DNA of 64,000 nt from Cyanophora paradoxa CCMP329 (taxonomy: Eukaryota; Plantae; Glaucophyta). The notes beneath the pieces were generated by a model. That model searched no databases, was not told the origin of the DNA, and saw only the letters and a list, made by a program, of their open reading frames with translations. The position numbers and the translations under genes are program-made. Below are positions 29,920 to 41,450 of the stretch, in pieces (position 1 is the first letter of the stretch; the number at the start of each line of letters is the position of its first letter). Location: the NCBI GenBank assembly GCA_004431415.1, contig QPMI01000701.1, positions 1 to 64,000 of the forward strand, written 5' to 3'.

Positions 29920-31753
29920 ATGGCCTCGTTCGTGAGCAGCACAGGTTCGTCACGTCGTAACAACACTTTGGGCGGTGTTGCACGCCCGTGCCAGAGTTGA
30001 TTGGTTTGGCGCCAGGCTCGCTTCCGGCTTCTGCTAGCCGGCCGGTCGTTGCCTCGGCTTCTTGCACTCCGGCTGGACGCACGGCTGTCGGGCTGGCCAA
30101 GCGCTCCGCCTTCACTGGTTCCCGCGTACATGCCAGTGGCTCGGCCAGCTTTATCGCCCGCCCCGTTCGCTCGACAGTCGCCTCTCCGGCCGTCCGTCGC
30201 TCTTTTGATGTGACGGAAAGCTCGCCGCTGGTCCTCGCCTCGGCCGGTGAGTCGAGTGCGCGCGCGCGTAACGCTGGGCCGCCGCGACTCAACGGTCCCC
30301 TCCCTGCGCCGGGCGGGCCGCCGCAGACGGAAAATCGATCGTCATCGCGGGCGGTGGCACTGGCGGGCACGTGCTGCCGGCGCTGGCCATGGCGGACGCG
30401 TTCAAGAAGGCGCTGGGCCCGTCGACGGAGATCCTCTTCGTGGGGACGGAGCGCGGCATCGAGAAGACGCTCGTGCCGAAGCGGAACTACGAGATCGAGC
30501 TCATCCCGGGCGCCCCGATCGTCACCGGCGGCTCCATCTTCACCCGCCTCGCCAAGCTCTTCGCCGGCCTCTTCGCCCTCGTGCCCGCCCCGCGTCCCGC
30601 CCGCCCTCCGCCGAGCCCAGCCGGGGCCGCGCAGATCGCGGGGGTGATCGCGGCGTACAAGCTGCTGAAGAAGCGGAAGCCGAACCTGGTGCTGGGCGTC
30701 GGGGGCTACGCCTCGGCGGCGGCGGTGATCGCGGCGAAGATCCTGGGCATCCGCACGGCCCTGCACGAGTCGAACGCGGTGCCGGGCCTCACGAACAAGC
30801 TCCTCGGCTCCGCCGTCGACCGCGTCTACGTCGGCTTCGACGCCGCAAAGGGCGCCTTCCCCGCCGCCAAGACCGTCGTCACGGGCAACCCCGTGCGGCC
30901 CGAGATCGCCGCCACGTGGGAGGTCCGGCGCAAGGCCATGGAGGAGCAGGGCGCCAAGGCGCGGCTCCCGGCGCACGTGCTGGTGGTGGGGGGCTCGCAG
31001 GGGAGCCAGTTCCTGAATGAGCGCGTCCCCGCCCTCGTCGAGAAGGTCAAGCTCGGCATCCGCTACCGCGCCGCCCGCCGCGGCCACCTCCTCCCCGTCC
31101 GCCCCGCCCCCCCGCCCCCGCCACCGCGCCCCGCCGACGGAGCGGGGCGGGCAGGACCCGATCGTGAAGGTGCTGCACCAGGCCGGCCGGCGCGAGGGCG
31201 AGGCCGCCGCCACCGCCGCCGCCTACGCCGCCATCCCCTCCGGGCCCGCCCCGCCCCCGCCCGCCGCTCCCTCGCGCCCCCCCCGCCGGGCTGAGGGGGC
31301 GGGGCAGGGTGGAGGCGGAGGTGCGGGAGTTCGTGGACGACATGGACGCGAAGTACACGTGGGCGGACGTCGTCGTCTCCCGCTCGGGCGCCTCGACCAT
31401 CTCCGAGCTCGCCGCCGCCGGCGTCCCCTCCTTCCTCGTCCCCTACCCCGCCGCCGCCGGCGACCACCAGGCCCTCAACGCCGCCTGGCTCTCCGACAAG
31501 GGCGCCGCCTCCTGGATGCGCCAGGGCTCCTGGGACGACGACGAGGCCGCCGAGCGGTGCCCCCCCCGCCCCCGCGCCGCCCCGCCCCGCCCGGGCTGAG
31601 GTGCGGGGCGCGGGGCAGGCTGGTGGAGATGCTGTACGGGAGCGCGGGGACGCGGGAGAAGCTGGTGGCGGTGGCGGAGGCGGCGCACGCGGTGGCGCAC
31701 GAGGACGGCGCCGCCGCCGTCGTCCGCGACGCCGCCGCCCTCCTCGCCCCTGA
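29920..31753 (+). CDS. murG: Undecaprenyl-PP-MurNAc-pentapeptide N-acetylglucosaminyltransferase, plastid-targeted
   Basis: Transit peptide MASFVSST|ELIGLA... Motifs IAGGGTGGHVLPA, GVGGYAS, HESNAVPGLTN, TGNPVR, GGSQGS, SRSGASTISE, LVPYP and DHQALNA. The TGA at about 31751 needs a 1-nt homopolymer correction; otherwise the frame runs on to 32285. Confidence 0.96.
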
Positions 31754-32430
31754 GCCCGCCCCCGCGCCCCCTCCGACGTCCATCCCCGCCCCCCGCCGCG
31801 CGCCCCTGGACCTCGCGCCCGCGCTCTCCCCGGGGCGGTTGCTTTTTGCTCACACGCATAATTGTTTGGCCCGCTCTTTCGAATTCTTTTGCAAATTCAT
31901 TTCCTTCAATTTTAGATTCTTTCCATGGAGCCTCGGAGGCCTGCAGCCTGCAGCTGCGGGTGCTGCCTGCATGCGCAGTGCCAGCAGCAGTGGGCCTGCA
32001 TGCGCAGTGCCAGCAGCAGTGGGTGCCAGCAGCCGCAGTGCCTGCAGTACCGCGCGCATGAGAGCTAGATCGCATGCGGCGCCGGGGGTGAATGCGAACT
32101 TTGCGAATTCGAAGCTCCGCAATTTCTTATCCATGGCCGGCCGGGGGTACAGACTCCTGGGGAAGGGAAGGGCGGCAGCGGCCCATCATCCAGGCTGCAG
32201 CAGCAGCCGGACACGGAGAACGACGCAGCTGCAGGGATCATCAGTCGACTGGGCCGCGTCACATTCGATATTGACGCATTGTTAGCTAGGACGGCCCGGC
32301 GCGTCACATTCGGAAACGGCGTCGCCTGCATGTTCCGAGACGTTTTTGACAGCTTGTACGCGTAATCGATCGAGCTGGTAGTCAGGCAGCAGCGTACGCG
32401 TCGCCGTGCATAAGAATTAGCGTCTCGGCC

Positions 32431-35400
32431 ATGGTGATCTTCGGCGACCACGCTGAGGAGCAATATGGGCATTGCTTGCCCATGGAAGGGCACATCAAAA
32501 CCTTCCTCAGTGCGTCCTACGGTCTCCGCCTTATCTTCGGTCAAGCTTGCGAACGAACCGGCCCTTTTAACGACTCTTAGTCGCGCTCCCCGCTTCCTCG
32601 CGCCAACTGGTCCCCCGCTCTGTCCGTCTGATCGGTTTGTGCAGTCTGGTCGGATCTTGTCATCGCGATCAGCTACGCGTGGATCCCTGTGATGCTGGCC
32701 CTCTTCCTCCGCAAGCGCTGGATCGACTTGTGCGGGCCGCCCCCTCGCCGGCGCCGCGCCGTGCCGAGGCGGCTCGCGCAGCCACCTGCGGACGCGCAGC
32801 ATCATCGCGCTCTTCGTGGCCTTCATCATGGCCTGCGGCTCCACGCACCTCGTCTCGGTCTTCATCGTGCGCGCCCCGCCGCCCCGCCCTGCTGCCAGGG
32901 GAAGAAGGGCGACGGGGGCGGGGCGGGGCGGCGGCGGCAGATGACGCACGGGCAGACGGCGGATATAATGCGGCTCTCGGCGGCGCTCAAGTTCATCACG
33001 GCCGTCGTGAGCGCGGCCACGGCGGCCTTGATGTTCTGGGTGCGCCTCGCTCTCCACCCGCCCTCCCGCCCCCGGCCGGCCCGTGACGCCCCCCGAGGTG
33101 ATGCCGGCCGTGCTGCACATCCCAATCGAGCTCGAGCGCGAGAAGGTGCGAGCCGCGCCGCCCGCCTCGGGGGCCCGGCCTCCCGCCGCCTCGAGCGGGG
33201 GCGGCAGCTGCACCGGGCGGAGCTGGAGCGGGAGATCACGAGCCGGCGGGCGGCGGAGGGGGCGCTGCAGAAGCAGGTGAAGCACGCGGCGGTGCTGCGG
33301 CACATCACCGACGGCGTCCGCTCCTCCCTCGACGCCTCCCGCATCTTCGACGTCGCCGCCACCGAGGCCCGCCCCCTCTCCCGCCCCGCCCCCCCTCCCC
33401 GCCCCTGCTCTTGACCCGCCGGGCAGATCGGGCGGGCCTTCGGGGCGGACATGTGCGCCATCTGGGTCTGCGGCGGGGCGGCCGGGGTGGACCCCGAGGC
33501 GGGGGGGACCCCCGCCCCCACGCCGCCCTCGTCGGCCGCCGCCCTCGGGGCGGCCCCGGCGCGCGCTCCGGGGCCACCCCTCCGCTGCGTCGCCGTCTTC
33601 AACGGCACCGTCACCCGCCCCGGCACGCCCTCTGACGGCCCCAGCGCCGCCCGCCGCTCCTACACCGCCCGCCCTTCGTCCCCCGCCCCGCCTCCGTCCC
33701 CTCTCTCCTCTCCGCCGGGACCCCGGCCGGCGCCCGGAGCCTCAGCATCTCGGCGGCGGCGAACCGGCTGGCGGCGGGGCTGCGCGTGGAGGCGGCAGGC
33801 CCGCCCGGCGGCATCGGCCTCTCCGAGGGCGGCTTCCGGCGCGTGGGCGCCCTCCGCGGCTACGCGCCCCTGGCGAGCGGCGAGGAGGAGGCCGGGGCCG
33901 GCCCCGCGCCGCTGAACGCGGGGGCGGCGGGGGAGGTGGAGGGGGCGGGGGGTCGACGCGGAGCGGGTCGGGGTGGGTGGAGGAGAGGGAGGGTGCGGGG
34001 GAGGCGGCGGGCCCGCGGCTGCTGCTGCCGGGGGCCCGCGTCGAGGAGTTCCCCTCATCCGCCGCGCCCTCGCCTCGGACGCCATCCTCCAGGCCCGCCC
34101 CCCGCGCCCCCCGCCCCGCCCCGCCCCGCCCACCCCCCGCCCCCGCCCCGCAGGTGCCCGACGTGCGGCAGGACCCCGACCACGCCTGCTACGCCTTCTT
34201 CGAGGTCCCCGCCCCCGCGCCTCCCTGCCCCCCGGCCCCCCTGGAGCGGGCGGGGCGTGGCGCAGGAGATGCGGGCGGGGAGCGCGTTCGTGGTGCGGAC
34301 GAGCTTCGCGGGGGAGGCGAACGGGGTGATCTTCCTGGCGCGCCGCGGGCCCTCGCCGCGCCTCGCCGGCGACGAGGCCGAGCTCCTCGCCGCCGTCGCC
34401 AAGCAGGTCGGCATCGCCTCGAGCAGGGTGCGCCCCCGCCCCGCCGCCCCCCGCGCCGCCGGCCTCGGCGCGCCGCCGGGGCCGACGGGGGCGGGGCGCA
34501 GCGCGGATGCTGGCGAAGGAGCGGCGGGTGAACGCGGCGCTGGAGCGCGCCCGGGCCGCCGCCGAGGAGGTGCCGCCCCCCGCCCCCGCCCCTCACTCAC
34601 TTTCATTGAGATCCTTCAACTCTATGCTCAATTTCTGCAGACAAACAGCGCCAAGTCCCGCTTCATCGGTCCGCCTGCCCCCCGCCCCGCCGCCCCGGCC
34701 CCCTCCCTCCCACCCCGCCGCCCCTCACGCGAGCCGGCGCCCCCGCGGGGAAAAAAAAGCTTCAATGTCGCACGAGATCAGGACGCCGCTGAACGCGGTG
34801 ATCGGGTTCACGTCGGTGCTGCTGCAGTACGGCGAGTCCGGCAGCGCCGCCTACCGCCTCAGCCCCGAGCAGGCCGACATGCTCGAGACGTCCGCCCCGC
34901 CCCGCCCCGCCCTGCCCCGCCCCACGCGCCAGGCCCGCAGGGGGCTGAGTGGGCGGGCGGCAGGATCCGGAGCTCGGGGGAGACGCTCCTGACGGTCATC
35001 AACGGTGCGCACGCCGGCCCCGCCCCTGCTCTCCTCGCTAACTGCGACCGCAGACATCCTGGTCCGCACGCCGGCGGGGGGGCGGGGCCGGGGCCCTCGT
35101 CCCCGCGGGCGTGCTCAGGAGGGGCCTGGGCGGGGCGCAGGACTTCTCGAAGCTGGAGGCGCGGCGGGTGGAGTTCGAGGAGCGCGCCTTCTCCCTCCCC
35201 ACCATCATCGAGGAGTGCCTCGAGATCATCGTGCGCACAGCCGCCCGCCCCCTGCGCGATGGCGCCCGCGTAGCCTCGCCGCTGCGTTGGGCGGCGGGGC
35301 GGGGGCCTCACGGGCGGGGGCCTGGGCAGGCGACGGAGGCGGGGCGGAAGGGCCTCTCGCTGGCGTGGGCGGTGGAGGAGGAGGTGCCGGCGCTGGTGGT

Positions 35401-37802
35401 CGGCGACCCCACCCGCCTCAAGCAGATCCTCCTCGTGCGCCCCCGCACCCCCCGGCCCCGCCCCCGCACCCCGCCCCCGAACTCGCCCCGCCGCGGGCGC
35501 AGAACTTGTTGTCGAATGCGGCGAAATTCACGGCCAAGGGGGGGATCACGCTCCGGTGCGAGCTGGCGCCCGAGCCCCAAGGAGGCGGGGGCGGAGAGGA
35601 GCCCGAGGGGCCCCACGTGGCGACGCCCCCGCCCCTGCTCGGCGCGCCCCTCGGCCCCGACGACCTCCAGCTGCTCTTCGTGCGCCCCGCCGCCCCGCCC
35701 CGCCCCGCCCCTCCGAGCCAGCGGGGCAGCACGTCACGGACTCGGGGATCGGGGTTTCGCCGGAGGGGATGGAGCGCCTCTTCATCCCCTTCTCCCAGGT
35801 CGACGCCTCCATCACCCGGTGCCCCCGCCCCGAGGCCGCCCCCGCTGCCGGCCCCCCCCTCCCCCTCCTCCAGCCTGACGGGCGCGCGGCGGGCAGGCAA
35901 TTCGGGGGCACGGGCCTGGGCCTAGCGATCAGCCGGAAGCTGTGCGAGGGGATGCGGGGCCGCATCTGGGCGACGAGCCGGGCCGGGGAGGGCACGACCT
36001 TCTCCTTCTACATCGTCGTGCAGCGCGCCCCGGCGCCCTTGTCCCGCCCGCACCCCTCCTCCCGCCGCGCCTCCCTCGCCCCCGTGGCGCCGGCGGGGAC
36101 GAGCCCGAGCTCGAGCCGGGCCCCCTCGGGCGAGCTCTCCGGCGCCTCCAGCCGGGGCACGAGCGAGGGCGGCGAGGGGGACGAGGAGGCGGCGCGCGGG
36201 CGGCGGGTGGCGGTGGCGAGCGCGTGCGCGGTGGAGCGGCGCTTCTTCGAGGTGGAGCTGGGGCGGGCGGGGGCGGCGTGCTTCGCGGCGGCGAGCCTCG
36301 AGGAGGCGCTCGCGGCCGCCGCGGGGCCCGTCGACCTCGTCGTCCTCGACTCCCCGGGGCCCCCGAGGCCGCCGCCCTCGCCCAGCTCCCCGTCGCCCCC
36401 CCGCCCTCATCCTGCAGCCCCCCGGCCTCCCCCGCCCCTCCAAGTCGGCCGCCGGCCCCGCCGCCCTCTCCCGCCCGCTGCGGCGGGCGGCCCTCTTCCG
36501 GGCCATCAAGCGGGCGCTGCTGGCGCCGGAGCCCGGGGCGGGGATGCCGCGGAGCCAGCGCTCGCACTCGGCCCCCAACGCCCTCGACCCCGCCCTCGCC
36601 CTCGCCCGCCCCGGCCCCGGCTCCCTCGAGCACTCCCCGCCCCCTCCCGCCCCCTCCCGCGGCAGCTTCGACCGCGAGGAGGCCGCCCGCGTGGGGCAGG
36701 GCGGGCGGGGAGCCCCTTGGCGGGGGCGGGCGCCTCCGCGGGCCCCTCCTCCCCGCCATCGTCGCCCTCCCGACGTCGGCGACGCCGCCGCTGCGGCCGT
36801 CCCCCGCCCCGCCCCGCTGCCCCTCCACGACCACTTGCGCCCCCAGCCCGTCCTGCCCGCCCCGCCCCCGCCTCCCGCGGCGGCGGCGCCGGTCCTGGAG
36901 CTGGAGCCTGCGGAGGGGGGGGAGGAGGGAGAGGAGGAGGGGGCGGGGCCGCCGCCGCGCATCCTGGTGGCGGAGGACAACCTGGTGAACCAGAAGGTGG
37001 TGAGCCGCCTCCTCGCGGTCGTGCACGGCCTCCAGACCCTCCCCGGCCTCGTCTGCGTCCCCAACGGTGCGCCCGCCAGCGAGTGAGGGCCCCGCTCGGG
37101 GGGCCCCGCCGGGCGCGCCCCCGCGTGCGGCTCGGTGAGTGGGGTCGGGGCGGGGCCAGGGCTGGAGGCGGTGCGGGCGGTGAGCGGGGCGGGGCGGGGC
37201 GCTTCGACGTAGTCTTCATGGACCTCTCCATGCCGGTCATGTCCGTGCCCGCCGCCCCCCAGCTCGCCCGGGCCCGCCCCTCTCACCCCCGCCTCCCCCC
37301 CCCCCCCCCCCCCCCTTCCCCCCCGCAGGGACGGCCTCGCCGCCTCTGCCCGCATCCGCGCCGAGGTGCCCCCAGACCAGCAGCCGCACATCATCGCCCT
37401 CACGTGCCCCCGCCCCCGCCCTCCCCCCCGCCCCCGCCCGCCTGCCGGCCGGCGCTGAGGCTTGCGCTGGGCAGGGCGAACGTGAGCGAGGAGGACCGGC
37501 GGGCGTGCCTGGCGGCGGGCATGGACGGCTTCCTGCGCAAGCCCCTCCGCCTCGAGGAGCTCCGCGCCGCCCTCGACGCCTTCCACGCCGCCCGCCGCCC
37601 CGCACCCGGCCCACCGCCGCCCGCGCCTTCGCCCCCGCCCGCCCCCGCCGCCCCTGACCCCCTGCCCCGCCGCCTCCCGTCGGCTACCTCCTCTCCGGGG
37701 GCTTCCCAGCCCCTCTGTCCTCCACGCTCCACGCTCACTGCTCTCCCCAGCTTTTCATTTGTTATCCTCACGTTGTGTCCATCAGCTTCTTATCTATACT
37801 AG
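32431..37802 (+). CDS. Ethylene-receptor-like hybrid histidine kinase (ethylene-binding domain, GAF, HisKA, HATPase, pseudo-REC, REC)
   Basis: YGHCL..I|WSDLVIAISYAWIP; FVAFIMACGSTHL; LKFITAVVSAATA; GAF-like region; SMSHEIRTPLNAVIG; NLLSNAAKFT; DSGIG; GGTGLGLAIS; AEDNLVNQKV; FMDLSMPVM|DG; FLRKP. The true stop may lie near 37657. Confidence 0.92.
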
Positions 37803-38123: not shown

Positions 38124-39419
38124 ATGGCGGTGGCGCTGCGGGACGGCGAGCGGGCGCTCGACCTCTGGCCCGACGGGCCGCCCGTATCGCCCAAGGAATT
38201 CCTTCTCCAGCTGCCGCCCGGTCCGCCGCGCCGCTCGCCGCGATGCGGCCGAGCTGAGCCTCGCGGCCTGCAGGCCCGTACACGGTGATGCGCACCGCCC
38301 GATCGCGCCAGGCCATCTCCAGCTTCGAGTTCCACGTCGCTCGGCTCGGTGCGGTGCAGGCAGCGGGCGCTCGGCGCCGCGGGCTCAAGTTGGAGGCTAA
38401 CGCGGCCGCCAACGTGGCCTCTCGCGCGCGCGCCAGCGCACTCGGCCGTTCTGCTCGAACTGCTTCCGGGAGCGCGGGCAGAGGACGAGGCGCGTGTGGG
38501 GCGGGCGCTCGAGGGCCGCCTGCGCGCGCACGCGGCGGCGGCGGTGGAGGCCTTTGAGTGGCAGCACGCGCCGCCCGACGGCGAGGAGTGCATGCTCACC
38601 GTCCTGCTCGAGCGCCTTCCACAAGCTGGCGCCAGCGTCGCACCCGCGAGTCCGGAGGAGCAAGTGCGCCGCCCGCGCCTGCGTCCACGCGGCCCCCCGC
38701 TGAGCGCGGTCGGTGCGCCGGGCAGGCTGCGCGGCTGCGGCTGTGGACGCACGCGGCGGCGCTGCACTGCCTCCCGCCGGAGCGGCCCGTGGTTGTCGAG
38801 GTCTTCGGTCCCCCGCGGCGCCTCCCCACCGCCAAGGACTCGCGCTGGATCCGGTCCGACCCCCGCCCCCGCCCCTGTGGCGCGGGCGCTGAGGGGCGGG
38901 GCGGGGGCGGGGGCCAGGGAGCGGGCGGGGCTGGAGGCGAGGCGGGGCGCGGGGGCGGTGGAGGTCGTGCTGACGGACGGGGCGGGGGCGCTGCTCGAGG
39001 GCCTCGTCTCGAACCTCGTCGTCGTCCGCCGCGACGGCGCCCTCCAGGCCGCCTCCCGCGGCGTCCTCCCGGCCACGTCGCCGCCGCCGCCCTCCGCGCC
39101 GCCGCCGCCGCCCCGCCGCCCCGCCCCTCGACCCCACGCCCCGCGCCTCGCCGAGCGCGCGCAGTGGGCCGAGGCCTTCCTGTGCAGTGCGCCCGCCCGC
39201 CCGCCCGCCCGCCCGTGCGCCCGACGGCGGCACGCGGCGAGCGGGGCGGCAGGCACGGCGCGGGAGGCGGTGCCGGTGGGGGAGATGCGGGTGCGGGAGG
39301 GCCCCGGGGCGGGGGAGAGCGTGCGGCTCGAGGCCCCGGGGCCCGTCACGCGCCGCGTCCAGGCCCTCCTCCGCGACGCCCTCCGCCGTGACGCCGCGCC
39401 CTTCCGCCAGCCCCCCTGA
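38124..39419 (+). CDS. PLP-dependent class IV aminotransferase-like protein
   Basis: PYTVMRT, FEFHVARL, AKDSRWIR (candidate PLP lysine), EVVL..LLEGLVSN, GVLP and WAEAFLCS. Confidence 0.8.
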
Positions 39420-39508
39420 GCGCAATCCCCACGTGCATTTGCCCACGTGCATTCACTGTGTACAGCCAAAGCGCAAGCCCGGGGGCGAGCGGGGGCGCGG
39501 GCGCGGGG

Positions 39509-41450
39509 CTACAGGACGGAAGCGAGGTGCCAGTCGGCGTCCGCCTCGGCGAGCGCCCCGCCCTCGAAGAGGTACAGCGCGTACCCCTCCCCGGCGGCGT
39601 GCCCCTCCCCGGCGGCGTGCCCCTCGCCGGCCTCTGCGGCCGCGTCGCCGTCGCCCTCGAAGGTCTGCGGGGCCTCCGCCTGGTACGCCACGAACTGCGC
39701 GGCCCACGCGGCGCGCCCCTCAGCTCGCGAGCAGGGGAAGCAAAGCAGACCGGCCGGGGGACCTGGTCGGCGTCGAGCAAGTTGGCGGGTTTCGAGAGGA
39801 CCGTCACCGTTGCGTCGACCTTCACCGCCGCCGGCGTCGCGTTGGCGGCCGCCGGCGTCGCATTGGCGGCCGCCGGCGTCGCGTTGGCGGCCGCCGGCGT
39901 CGCGTTGGCGGCCGCCGGCGTCGCGTTGGCGGCCGCCGGCGTCGCGTTGGCGGCCGCCGGCGTCGCGTTGGCGGCCGCCGGCGTCGCGTTGGCGGCCGCC
40001 GGCGTCGCGTTGGCGGCCGCCGGCGTCGCGTTGGCGGCCGCCGGCGTTGCGGCGGTGGCCGGCGCCGGGGTCGCGAGAACGATCAAGGGTTTGATGGGCG
40101 GCGGGGCCTGTGCCGCTGGCGGGGCCGGTGCGGGGATGACGACAGCCGCGGGCTTCGCCGGGGCGGCCTCCTTGATGGGGGCGGCGGCCTTGGCGGGTCC
40201 CTTCGAAGCGGCCTTGGCGGCTCCCTTTGCGGCCTTTGCGGCGGCCTTGCACGCCTCGGCGTCGTACTTGAGCTCAGCGGCCGGCACCGGCACGCCTGCG
40301 ACCGCGAGGGGCCGTCAGGGCGGGGGCCGGGAGGCGGGCGGGACGGGCGGGGCGGGCCCTTGAAGAGGGAGCGGGGGTCGTGCTTGGCCTCGGCGCGGAC
40401 GCGGTTCTCGCTGATCGCCTCGCACTTGCCCTTGTAGACGCCCCGCACGAGCTGCTCGTTCTCCTCCGCCGCCGCCGGGTTCCCCGCCGACTCCACCTGG
40501 AAGTCCCCTGCGAGCCGCCCCCCCGGGCGAGCTCAGCGGCGGCGGGGGGCGGGGGCCGGGGGGCGCACCTCTGAGATTGTGGAGAGCGTGGATGAGCTCG
40601 TGGGCGAGGCCGACGAAGGGCTCGTGCGAGTCGGCGGTGCCGGTGTGGCACGTCGGGTCGTACTCGATGGTCGTCTCCTTCGGCTGCCCCGCCTGCACCC
40701 CCTCGTACGCCGTTGTCTTCGCCGCCCCGTGCTTCGGTACGATCACCACTGCCCCCCCGCGCCCCGCGCCCCGTCACCCCCGCCCCGCCCCCCGCGCCCG
40801 GCCGCCCGGGCCGCGCACCCGGCTTGTTCAGCTTCAGAGCGATCCGATCGACCTCCTTGATGAGCTTCTTCCCCGTCGCTGCGCGCGCGAGAGAGAGAGC
40901 GCGCTCCTCAGCCGCGGGGGCGGCCGGGGAGGGCGAAGGCGGGCCGGCGGCGCACGGCCCGTGCTCTTGAGCTTCATCAGGTCCGAGCAGGTCATCGACT
41001 TGAAGCTGCCGGCGCCATCAGGGCCTCGTCGCGGCTCCCAGCGGCCTTCGCCGGGGCTTACACAGTGCACTTTGCCTTGGAGATGGAGCCGGCCGGGCAC
41101 TTCAGCAGGATGCCCTTGTTCTTCTGCTGCTCGACCTTGAAGCCGAGCTTCCCTGCGCGCCCCGCCACCATCAGCCGACGTCAACCGCCGATCTCAATCG
41201 CAGGTTGGCGGAGGCCGCGGGCGCGGTGGCGGAGGGTCGGCCGGTTCACTGGTCTTTGCCATCCCCAGCTCCGCTGGGGCAGCGGGCGACGCGCACCGAG
41301 GAAGCCCGGCTTCGGGACTCTGTAGCTGCAGGGCGTCGGCACTGCATCGTTGGCGTCGGCCATCGGCGCGTTCGGCTCATCCTTCACGGCAAACGCGAGC
41401 TCCTTGTCACCCCGCGTCGGCTCCCGGTGGAACCACTTAAGCAGGCCCAT
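39509..41450 (-). CDS. HExxH zinc metalloprotease, M91/NleD-effector-like, with Ala/Thr/Pro repeat tail
   Basis: ST|ATGKKLIKEV, TIEYDP, FVGLAHELIHALHNLRG, EENEQLVRG and ISENRVRAE. Exon phases are consistent from MGLLKWF at 41450. Confidence 0.7.
39830..40047. repeat. 21-bp coding minisatellite, 10 copies, encoding (AAANATP)n on the minus strand
   Basis: gccggcgtcgcgttggcggcc repeated; one copy has a silent variant. Confidence 0.95.

Follow-up and report, generated by a model that had tools for sequence, protein, structure and literature searches.

The 64,000-nt window analysed here belongs to contig QPMI01000701.1 of Cyanophora paradoxa CCMP329, where the G+C content is 72% and introns are abundant. 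A nuclear, intron-rich gene was found in this window with a coding sequence that spans positions 32431 to 37657 (all coordinates are on the + strand unless marked) and amounts, by a rough estimate, to ~1,200 codons. It encodes a hybrid histidine kinase in which an N-terminal three-helix domain of the ETR1 type is followed by a coiled coil, a GAF domain, a DHp domain, an ATP-binding domain, a degenerate receiver, a low-complexity linker and a canonical receiver. The initial annotation of the window had proposed a complete hybrid kinase with such an ethylene-binding domain in a probable glaucophyte; ETR1_N, GAF, HisKA, HATPase_c and a canonical receiver are indeed all found at the locus, and the host is a glaucophyte, C. 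paradoxa, for which a public EukProt model is 100% identical to the window. We consider it probable (about 0.7) that this is an expressed nuclear gene for an ETR1-type receptor in which copper-mediated ethylene binding would control a His-Asp phosphorelay.

The membrane domain is invisible as an open reading frame, as had been noted earlier, owing to introns which split its coding sequence over exons of 79, 85, 85, 99 and 48 nt. Exon 1 (32431-32509) begins at the first in-frame ATG and carries the N-terminal segment; RNA-like contigs are unbroken over 32300-32509, and no in-frame ATG occurs between an in-frame stop at 32347 and position 32431. The GHC residues of this exon (32467-32475) align with a bacterial P-H-G-x-C motif (PHGHC in the relative P0127) at a nearly equal distance from helix 1. 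Helix 1 is encoded by exon 2 (32645-32729), which has GT-AG introns on both sides and aligns with plant ETR1, and its peptide SDLVIAISYAWIP is located at 32650-32688. Helix 2 is encoded by exon 3 (32782-32866), with the peptide FVAFIMACGSTH at 32813-32848, where the acceptor at 32780-81 is consistent with the length of an RNA contig (315 + 2 nt = 85 + 85 + 99 + 48) and with the public model. Helix 3 lies in exon 4 (32941-33039), which was placed by profile match and alignments and holds the TAVVS motif within KFITAVVSAATA at 32989-33024. Exon 5 (33098-33145), placed by the mapping of the public model and by its splice sites, supplies the last part of helix 3 together with the juxtamembrane segment. 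Three hydrophobic segments were counted in this N-terminal domain.

The helix exons were translated singly and searched exon by exon, the sole spliced query being the public model (P0001). Exons 2, 3 and 4 match the Pfam family PF25487 (ETR1_N) in profile order at positions 9-31, 34-59 and 64-88 (E = 1.5e-5, 4.3e-6 and 1.4e-3). Three ordered matches on one strand within 400 bases are beyond chance. The spliced public model scored 71-77 bits against the same family (cut-off 27; E = 1.6e-21), and the match extends over positions 6-96 of the 97-position profile. In the PDB, no solved structure related to the ethylene-binding domain was found.

A previous study states that seven ETR1 residues are required for ethylene binding, where copper is held by C65 and H69 and positioned by D25 (PMC11819568). 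All seven are present in the Cyanophora domain, as the initial annotation had claimed, when it is aligned with a plant ETR1 orthologue (P0166, from Erythranthe), which belongs to a cluster named ethylene receptor 1 in our exhaustive profile search and on which the residue numbering was counted. Residues D25, Y32, I35, P36, I62, C65, H69 and K91 of P0166 correspond to D13, Y20, I23, P24, I53, C56, H60 and K83 of the public model. In helix 1 the equivalents are Asp 32653-55, Tyr 32674-76, Ile 32683-85 and Pro 32686-88; in helix 2 they are Ile 32825-27, Cys 32834-36 and His 32846-48; and the equivalent of K91 is a Lys at 32989-91 in helix 3. Copper is predicted to be bound by the Cys and His of helix 2. 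The Tyr, Ile, Cys and His were observed to be invariant, and the Pro nearly so, in 13 bacterial relatives. The helix-3 motif and the bacterial-style GHC described earlier were likewise recovered. The gapless alignment to ETR1 noted earlier for the two peptides holds within the helices; in the loops there are four extra residues in total, three between helices 1 and 2 and one between helices 2 and 3.

Kinase domains, receivers and exon layout

After the membrane domain come Pfam matches to GAF, HisKA and HATPase_c, in this order, both in the exons of the locus and in the public model. Exon 6 (33208-33366), which is supported by RNA contigs, encodes the coiled-coil linker and the start of the GAF domain. 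It is followed by an intron at 33367-33426 that is the sole exception to the GT-AG rule among the introns of this gene (52-135 nt): the RNA joint falls from 33364/66 to 33425/27 and GC..AG is the only standard splice pair within the 2-nt ambiguity. The GAF domain is broken by a long low-complexity insertion. Its N-terminal half, together with this insertion, lies at 33427-34092, which is probably one long exon of uncertain exact structure; it becomes readable once assembly deletions at 33671, about 339xx and 34050 are allowed for, and RNA contigs are unspliced over 33425-33692 and about 33981-34092 with a C inserted after 33671 and 34050. The C-terminal half (34154-34427) is formed by exons 34154-34204 and 34266-34427, with an RNA joint from 34202 to 34264 and Pfam GAF matches. 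A supposed 9-nt micro-exon at the joint 34418>34501 was rejected: the exon really extends to 34427, one C is missing from the assembly, and the acceptor is at 34500-01.

The DHp domain (34502-35230; Pfam HisKA, 73 bits) is built from six exons, 34502-34569, 34641-34667, 34759-34890, 34965-35004, 35054-35061 and 35141-35230, with joints seen in three RNA runs. The fifth of these is an 8-nt micro-exon, ACATCCTG, with AG/GT flanks on which three RNA runs and the public model agree, and which supplies part of a conserved D-I-L in the DHp helix. The H box SHEIRTPLN lies at 34768, where the phospho-accepting His, as judged by the motif, is at 34771-73. The catalytic ATP-binding domain (35330-36190; Pfam HATPase_c, 84 bits) comprises exons 35330-35434, 35503-35678, 35729-35817 and 35896 onward, with RNA joints between them. 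Its N box (35503), G1 box (35739), F box (35781) and G2 box (35904) are all intact.

Two receiver modules follow. The first (36201-36540) is readable only when a C is inserted at 36351 and at 36395, as the RNA supports, and is degenerate: it retains the Asp of DLVVLD (36333-50), has lost the acidic pair as well as the Thr and the Lys, and gave no Pfam match. After a low-complexity linker of ~200 residues, the canonical receiver (36958-37657) is formed by exons up to 37066, 37160-37240, 37329-37403 and 37475-37657, as supported by one RNA contig and GT-AG sites, and ends with a TGA stop codon at 37655-37657. It retains the acidic pair in AEDN, the Asp at 37221-23, the Thr at 37402-04 and the Lys at 37539-41. 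Single receiver pieces scored 21.1 and 13.5 bits against Pfam Response_reg, below the cut-off, because the exon pieces are short. By motif and Pfam we could thus locate every downstream element that had been described, from the GAF domain and the five kinase boxes to the degenerate and intact receivers. A His-Asp relay would be the natural output of this protein since the H box, the catalytic boxes and the canonical receiver are all intact, and a role in docking or dimerisation may fall to the degenerate receiver.

Transcripts, missing bases and the public gene model

Seven sequencing runs contain ~0.4 of the words sampled from the gene stretch, which is roughly the exonic share. Three of the runs, from two studies, carry spliced RNA-like contigs of the gene; these three were taken as RNA because their contigs are spliced, and a 2012 run (X12) with unspliced pieces was taken as DNA. 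The receptor gene is therefore transcribed and spliced, and most exon joints were confirmed by RNA contigs. An upstream open reading frame of 11 codons in another frame (ATG at 32330; 32330-32365) was noticed in the transcribed leader before the receptor start.

The RNA contigs carry an extra C or G after 33671, 34050, ~34418, 36351, 36395, 37190 and 37609. All of these bases lie in homopolymers and each restores the reading frame, so that the assembly contains at least seven one-base deletions in this gene. As an example, RNA contigs are unspliced across 35896-36422 with two inserted bases, and a single RNA contig that runs from 36896 beyond 37609 has an additional G after 37190 and an additional C after 37609. 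The listed RNA-contig pieces are otherwise letter-identical to the window. The C. paradoxa assembly was built on PacBio data, and its PacBio reference was used to fill regions that lacked Illumina coverage (Price et al. 2019, PMC6704402), which explains the homopolymer deletions. The same kind of error is likely in other genes of this assembly.

The public model P0001 (EukProt tig00021795_g23531.t1, 1034 residues) extends from 32482 to 37209 and every block of it is 100% identical to the window. ETR1_N, GAF, HisKA and HATPase_c are already recorded for it. The model was retrieved by a word-based protein search in which a true exon was the scored region; the same kind of search with the open reading frame 32689-33411 gave no matches because its search words were dominated by low-complexity residues of intron origin.

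Several features of the public model differ from the transcripts. Its start (ATG 32482) is probably 17 codons late, at the loss of the conserved N-terminal Cys. Its intron at 36342-36417 is invented, as the RNA is unspliced there, and its intron at 33679-33746 is probably invented also, with an RNA contig extending past the donor at 33678. Its acceptor at 34519 is wrong, the true acceptor giving an exon start at 34502, and it ends at 37209, inside the true receiver. The early stop and the invented introns compensate for the assembly deletions. The corrected coding sequence regains the N-terminal Cys and a complete receiver, both of which are needed for expressing the protein.

Two further features were noticed in the window. 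Upstream of the receptor gene, an intron-split gene at 30371-31600 (+) reads as one for a MurG-like glycosyltransferase of peptidoglycan synthesis, a neighbour which fits the glaucophyte plastid with its wall of peptidoglycan. Downstream, an open reading frame on the opposite strand (39346-40293, -) encodes the hexapeptide AANATP in a long tandem array.

Relatives and phylogeny

The receptor gene belongs to a three-gene family in C. paradoxa where the two paralogues, tig00000480_g1320 (50% identical) and tig00020961_g16625, are on other contigs and one of them carries the EukProt label EP00741 Cyanophora paradoxa. An exhaustive profile search with residues 1-415 of the public model returned 4,346 proteins at E <= 0.001, of which three reached E <= 1e-30, including the query and g1320, with g16625 lower in the list. 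Ethylene-binding domains were found to be common in bacteria: 580 of 600 pattern matches were confirmed, in many phyla, at 35-44% identity to the Cyanophora domain. The named cyanobacterial domains, which belong to proteins of the order binding domain-PAS-kinase, are 36-43% identical and therefore on a par with those of other phyla. The nearest matches in a word-based search with the binding domain were bacterial PAS kinases at 37-46% identity.

Among the metagenome relatives, three proteins (P0117, P0120 and P0123) have the domain joined to the C-terminal end of a P1B ATPase of the copper type, with a kinase beyond it in two of them. The helix-1 Ser-Asp is replaced by Ala-Asn in all three, and their sequences look like a copper-linked variant of the ethylene-binding type of domain. 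Another relative, P0174 (L081 10001-12226, a JGI metagenome contig), is an intronless gene for a 741-residue protein with the layout ETR1_N-GAF-kinase-receiver. Its neighbours are ATG27, ARID and Kelch genes, which indicates that it comes from a eukaryote, and it is the nearest non-glaucophyte relative on the tree of binding domain and GAF. The domain order of the Cyanophora protein is common to plant ETR1, to an amoebozoan homologue and to this uncultured-eukaryote homologue.

Plant ethylene perception is commonly attributed to a gene of cyanobacterial origin acquired along with the plastid, and glaucophytes are a key lineage for testing this idea. Trees were sampled from the best 150 matches. 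When only the binding domain was used (121 columns), quick trees of 148 rows (FastTree and IQ-TREE) placed the Cyanophora gene and g1320 with the streptophyte receptors and Rozella at support 84-89, and a careful tree of 60 rows placed them inside a bacterial polytomy. The streptophyte grouping was neither supported nor rejected in the approximately unbiased (AU) test (p = 0.435). With binding domain and GAF together (312 columns, 29 rows), the three C. paradoxa proteins were observed to group with Ceratiomyxa (Amoebozoa) and P0174 at support 90/94, and the streptophytes formed a separate 100/100 clade. Some outgroup rows of this alignment have PAS aligned to GAF, and Rozella and P0234 form long branches. 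An exclusive glaucophyte-plus-streptophyte clade was rejected on the same alignment, as the log-likelihood falls by 24.7 (p-AU 0.014) for a constraint group that was named after the tree was seen. Cyanobacterial sequences were not adjacent to the Cyanophora gene in any tree, which at this low resolution is an absence of support and not a disproof.

Taken together, these comparisons suggest that the gene belongs among eukaryotic ETR-type receptors and is neither nested in the plant clade nor its exclusive sister. The relevance to a plastid origin that the initial annotation had proposed is not borne out, since cyanobacterial domains are no closer than those of other phyla and lie elsewhere in the trees, and the glaucophyte-plus-streptophyte clade is rejected. 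Our first phylogeny, as judged from these alignments, does not fit a simple descent from plastid to plant.

The Cyanophora protein shares with plant ETR1 (subfamily 1; Arabidopsis ETR1, P0166) the order ETR1_N, GAF, HisKA, HATPase_c and receiver, the seven binding residues with K91, a Cys before helix 1 and intact H/N/G1/F/G2 boxes. It differs in that its sensor is about 36% identical and has extra residues in both inter-helix loops, its GAF domain carries the large low-complexity insertion, a degenerate receiver and ~200-residue linker precede the true receiver, and it is not an exclusive sister of the streptophyte receptors. In addition, its kinase core is closer to generic hybrid kinases (177 bits to 7z8n) than to the ETR1 catalytic domain (76 bits to 4pl9). 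The bacterial receptors SynEtr1 (Synechocystis) and AzoEtr1 (Azospirillum) have the same seven residues and use two-component phosphotransfer rather than a CTR1/EIN2 output. The bacterial relatives that we retrieved differ from the Cyanophora protein in being mostly binding domain-PAS-kinase proteins at the identities given above.

Non-plant eukaryotic homologues of ethylene receptors were reportedly described by Herivaux in 2017. They include proteins of fungi, Capsaspora, Acanthamoeba and a diatom (Kabbara et al. 2018, PMC6324907), and those of early-diverging fungi, Capsaspora, Acanthamoeba and the diatom resemble the Cyanophora protein in being hybrid kinases with three helices and all the conserved binding residues. 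In the 2012 C. paradoxa assembly the same survey detected a single kinase, which was a phytochrome, and it confined the ETR group within Archaeplastida to Streptophyta (PMC6324907); a glaucophyte member therefore adds to what was recorded there. The 2019 C. paradoxa genome paper is silent on kinases and ethylene (PMC6704402). The ETR family is thus well known outside plants and the gene model was already public, which limits the novelty of the locus.

Ethylene sensing weighed against the alternatives

Ethylene biology has been documented in this alga. C. paradoxa produces ethylene from ACC (1-aminocyclopropane-1-carboxylic acid) and under stress, and it reacts to ACC and ethephon by forming reactive oxygen species and ceasing to grow (Genot et al. 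2024, PMC11603287). The main text of that study names no receptor and called for gene identification (PMC11603287). None of the three contig identifiers is named in the papers that were searched; the gene may already be included in the supplementary homologue list of PMC11603287. The receptor gene described here is one of three candidate sensors for these published responses to ethylene, ACC and ethephon.

A mechanism can be drawn from Arabidopsis ETR1, SynEtr1 and AzoEtr1. Ethylene binding has been demonstrated experimentally for both bacterial proteins (PMC11819568; PMC10518463), and in AzoEtr1 the same seven residues occur alongside measured 14C-ethylene binding (PMC11819568). By analogy, the membrane domain would dimerise, possibly via the N-terminal Cys, and Cu(I) would be held by the helix-2 Cys and His and positioned by the helix-1 Asp. 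The binding of ethylene at the copper would be relayed via helix 3 (Lys), the coiled coil and the GAF domain to the kinase, which would then alter autophosphorylation of the H-box His and the transfer to the Asp of the C-terminal receiver. From there the phosphate would pass to a putative HPt protein and a response regulator.

Several observations weigh against this reading. The ETR1_N score of 71-77 bits is low in comparison with the 107-150 bits of plant, amoebozoan, cyanobacterial and g16625 domains, and together with the extra residues in both loops it marks the binding domain, as judged by sequence, as a divergent member of the family. Ethylene and copper binding by the Cyanophora protein are predicted from homology, and either of the two paralogues could be the functional sensor instead. 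Furthermore, RNA contigs cover 32300-33692 and about 33981-36422, and none of those listed bridges 33692 to about 33981. The initial annotation depended on the splicing of the transmembrane exons to the kinase exons, and this part of it stands only partly: the public model joins both sides and a single GAF domain extends across the gap, which argues for one gene but is no proof, while the bridging contig is missing. One further base is likely to be missing from the assembly within this interval.

The strongest alternative is that the ETR1-like fold responds to a different cue, for instance copper status, some other gaseous or small unsaturated ligand or the condition of the membrane, or that it serves only to anchor and dimerise a GAF-regulated kinase. 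We regard it as unlikely. The low family score and the loop insertions are in its favour, and the relatives fused to copper P-type ATPases, with their change of the helix-1 Asp to Asn, suggest copper-related jobs in some members. Ethylene binding has been experimentally tested in few members of the family (PMC11819568). However, all seven residues essential for ethylene binding by ETR1 are kept in the Cyanophora domain together with the K91 equivalent, and ethylene responses are documented in the organism itself (PMC11603287).

It is very improbable that the gene is a decaying pseudogene, with genuine frame breaks and with RNA that stems from a paralogue. The coding exons of the window do contain at least seven frame breaks and the public model ends early, but the RNA pieces differ from the window only by extra homopolymer C or G bases, each of which restores the frame, and the paralogues, at only about 50% identity, cannot be the source of this RNA. 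The PacBio-based assembly with its filled stretches (PMC6704402) provides a simple origin for the breaks. Bacterial contamination or a very recent bacterial transfer, for which the bacterial PAS kinases nearest to the binding domain at 37-46% identity could be cited, is already contradicted by the intron structure, with spliceosomal introns that number well over twenty, one of them GC-AG, and with a micro-exon of 8 nt, as well as by the gene G+C content (72%, as in the rest of the window), the intron-split algal neighbours, the two paralogues on other contigs and the eukaryotic identity of the closest full-architecture relatives, and it can be set aside.

An ETR1-type receptor of C. paradoxa that binds ethylene by means of copper and signals through a His-Asp relay is thus the reading we prefer, and the locus and its two paralogues provide concrete, clonable receptor candidates. 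A broader proposal, which we consider doubtful at present, is that glaucophytes retain a small family of working ETR-type receptors with a plain His-Asp phosphorelay that are nearer to amoebozoan and other heterotroph receptors than to those of plants or cyanobacteria. If this is true, the receptor type would have been present in early eukaryotes or would have moved between eukaryotes, the textbook view that plant ethylene perception came from the plastid by endosymbiotic transfer would need to be revised, and the Cyanophora gene would encode the sensor responsible for the ethylene responses recorded in C. paradoxa.

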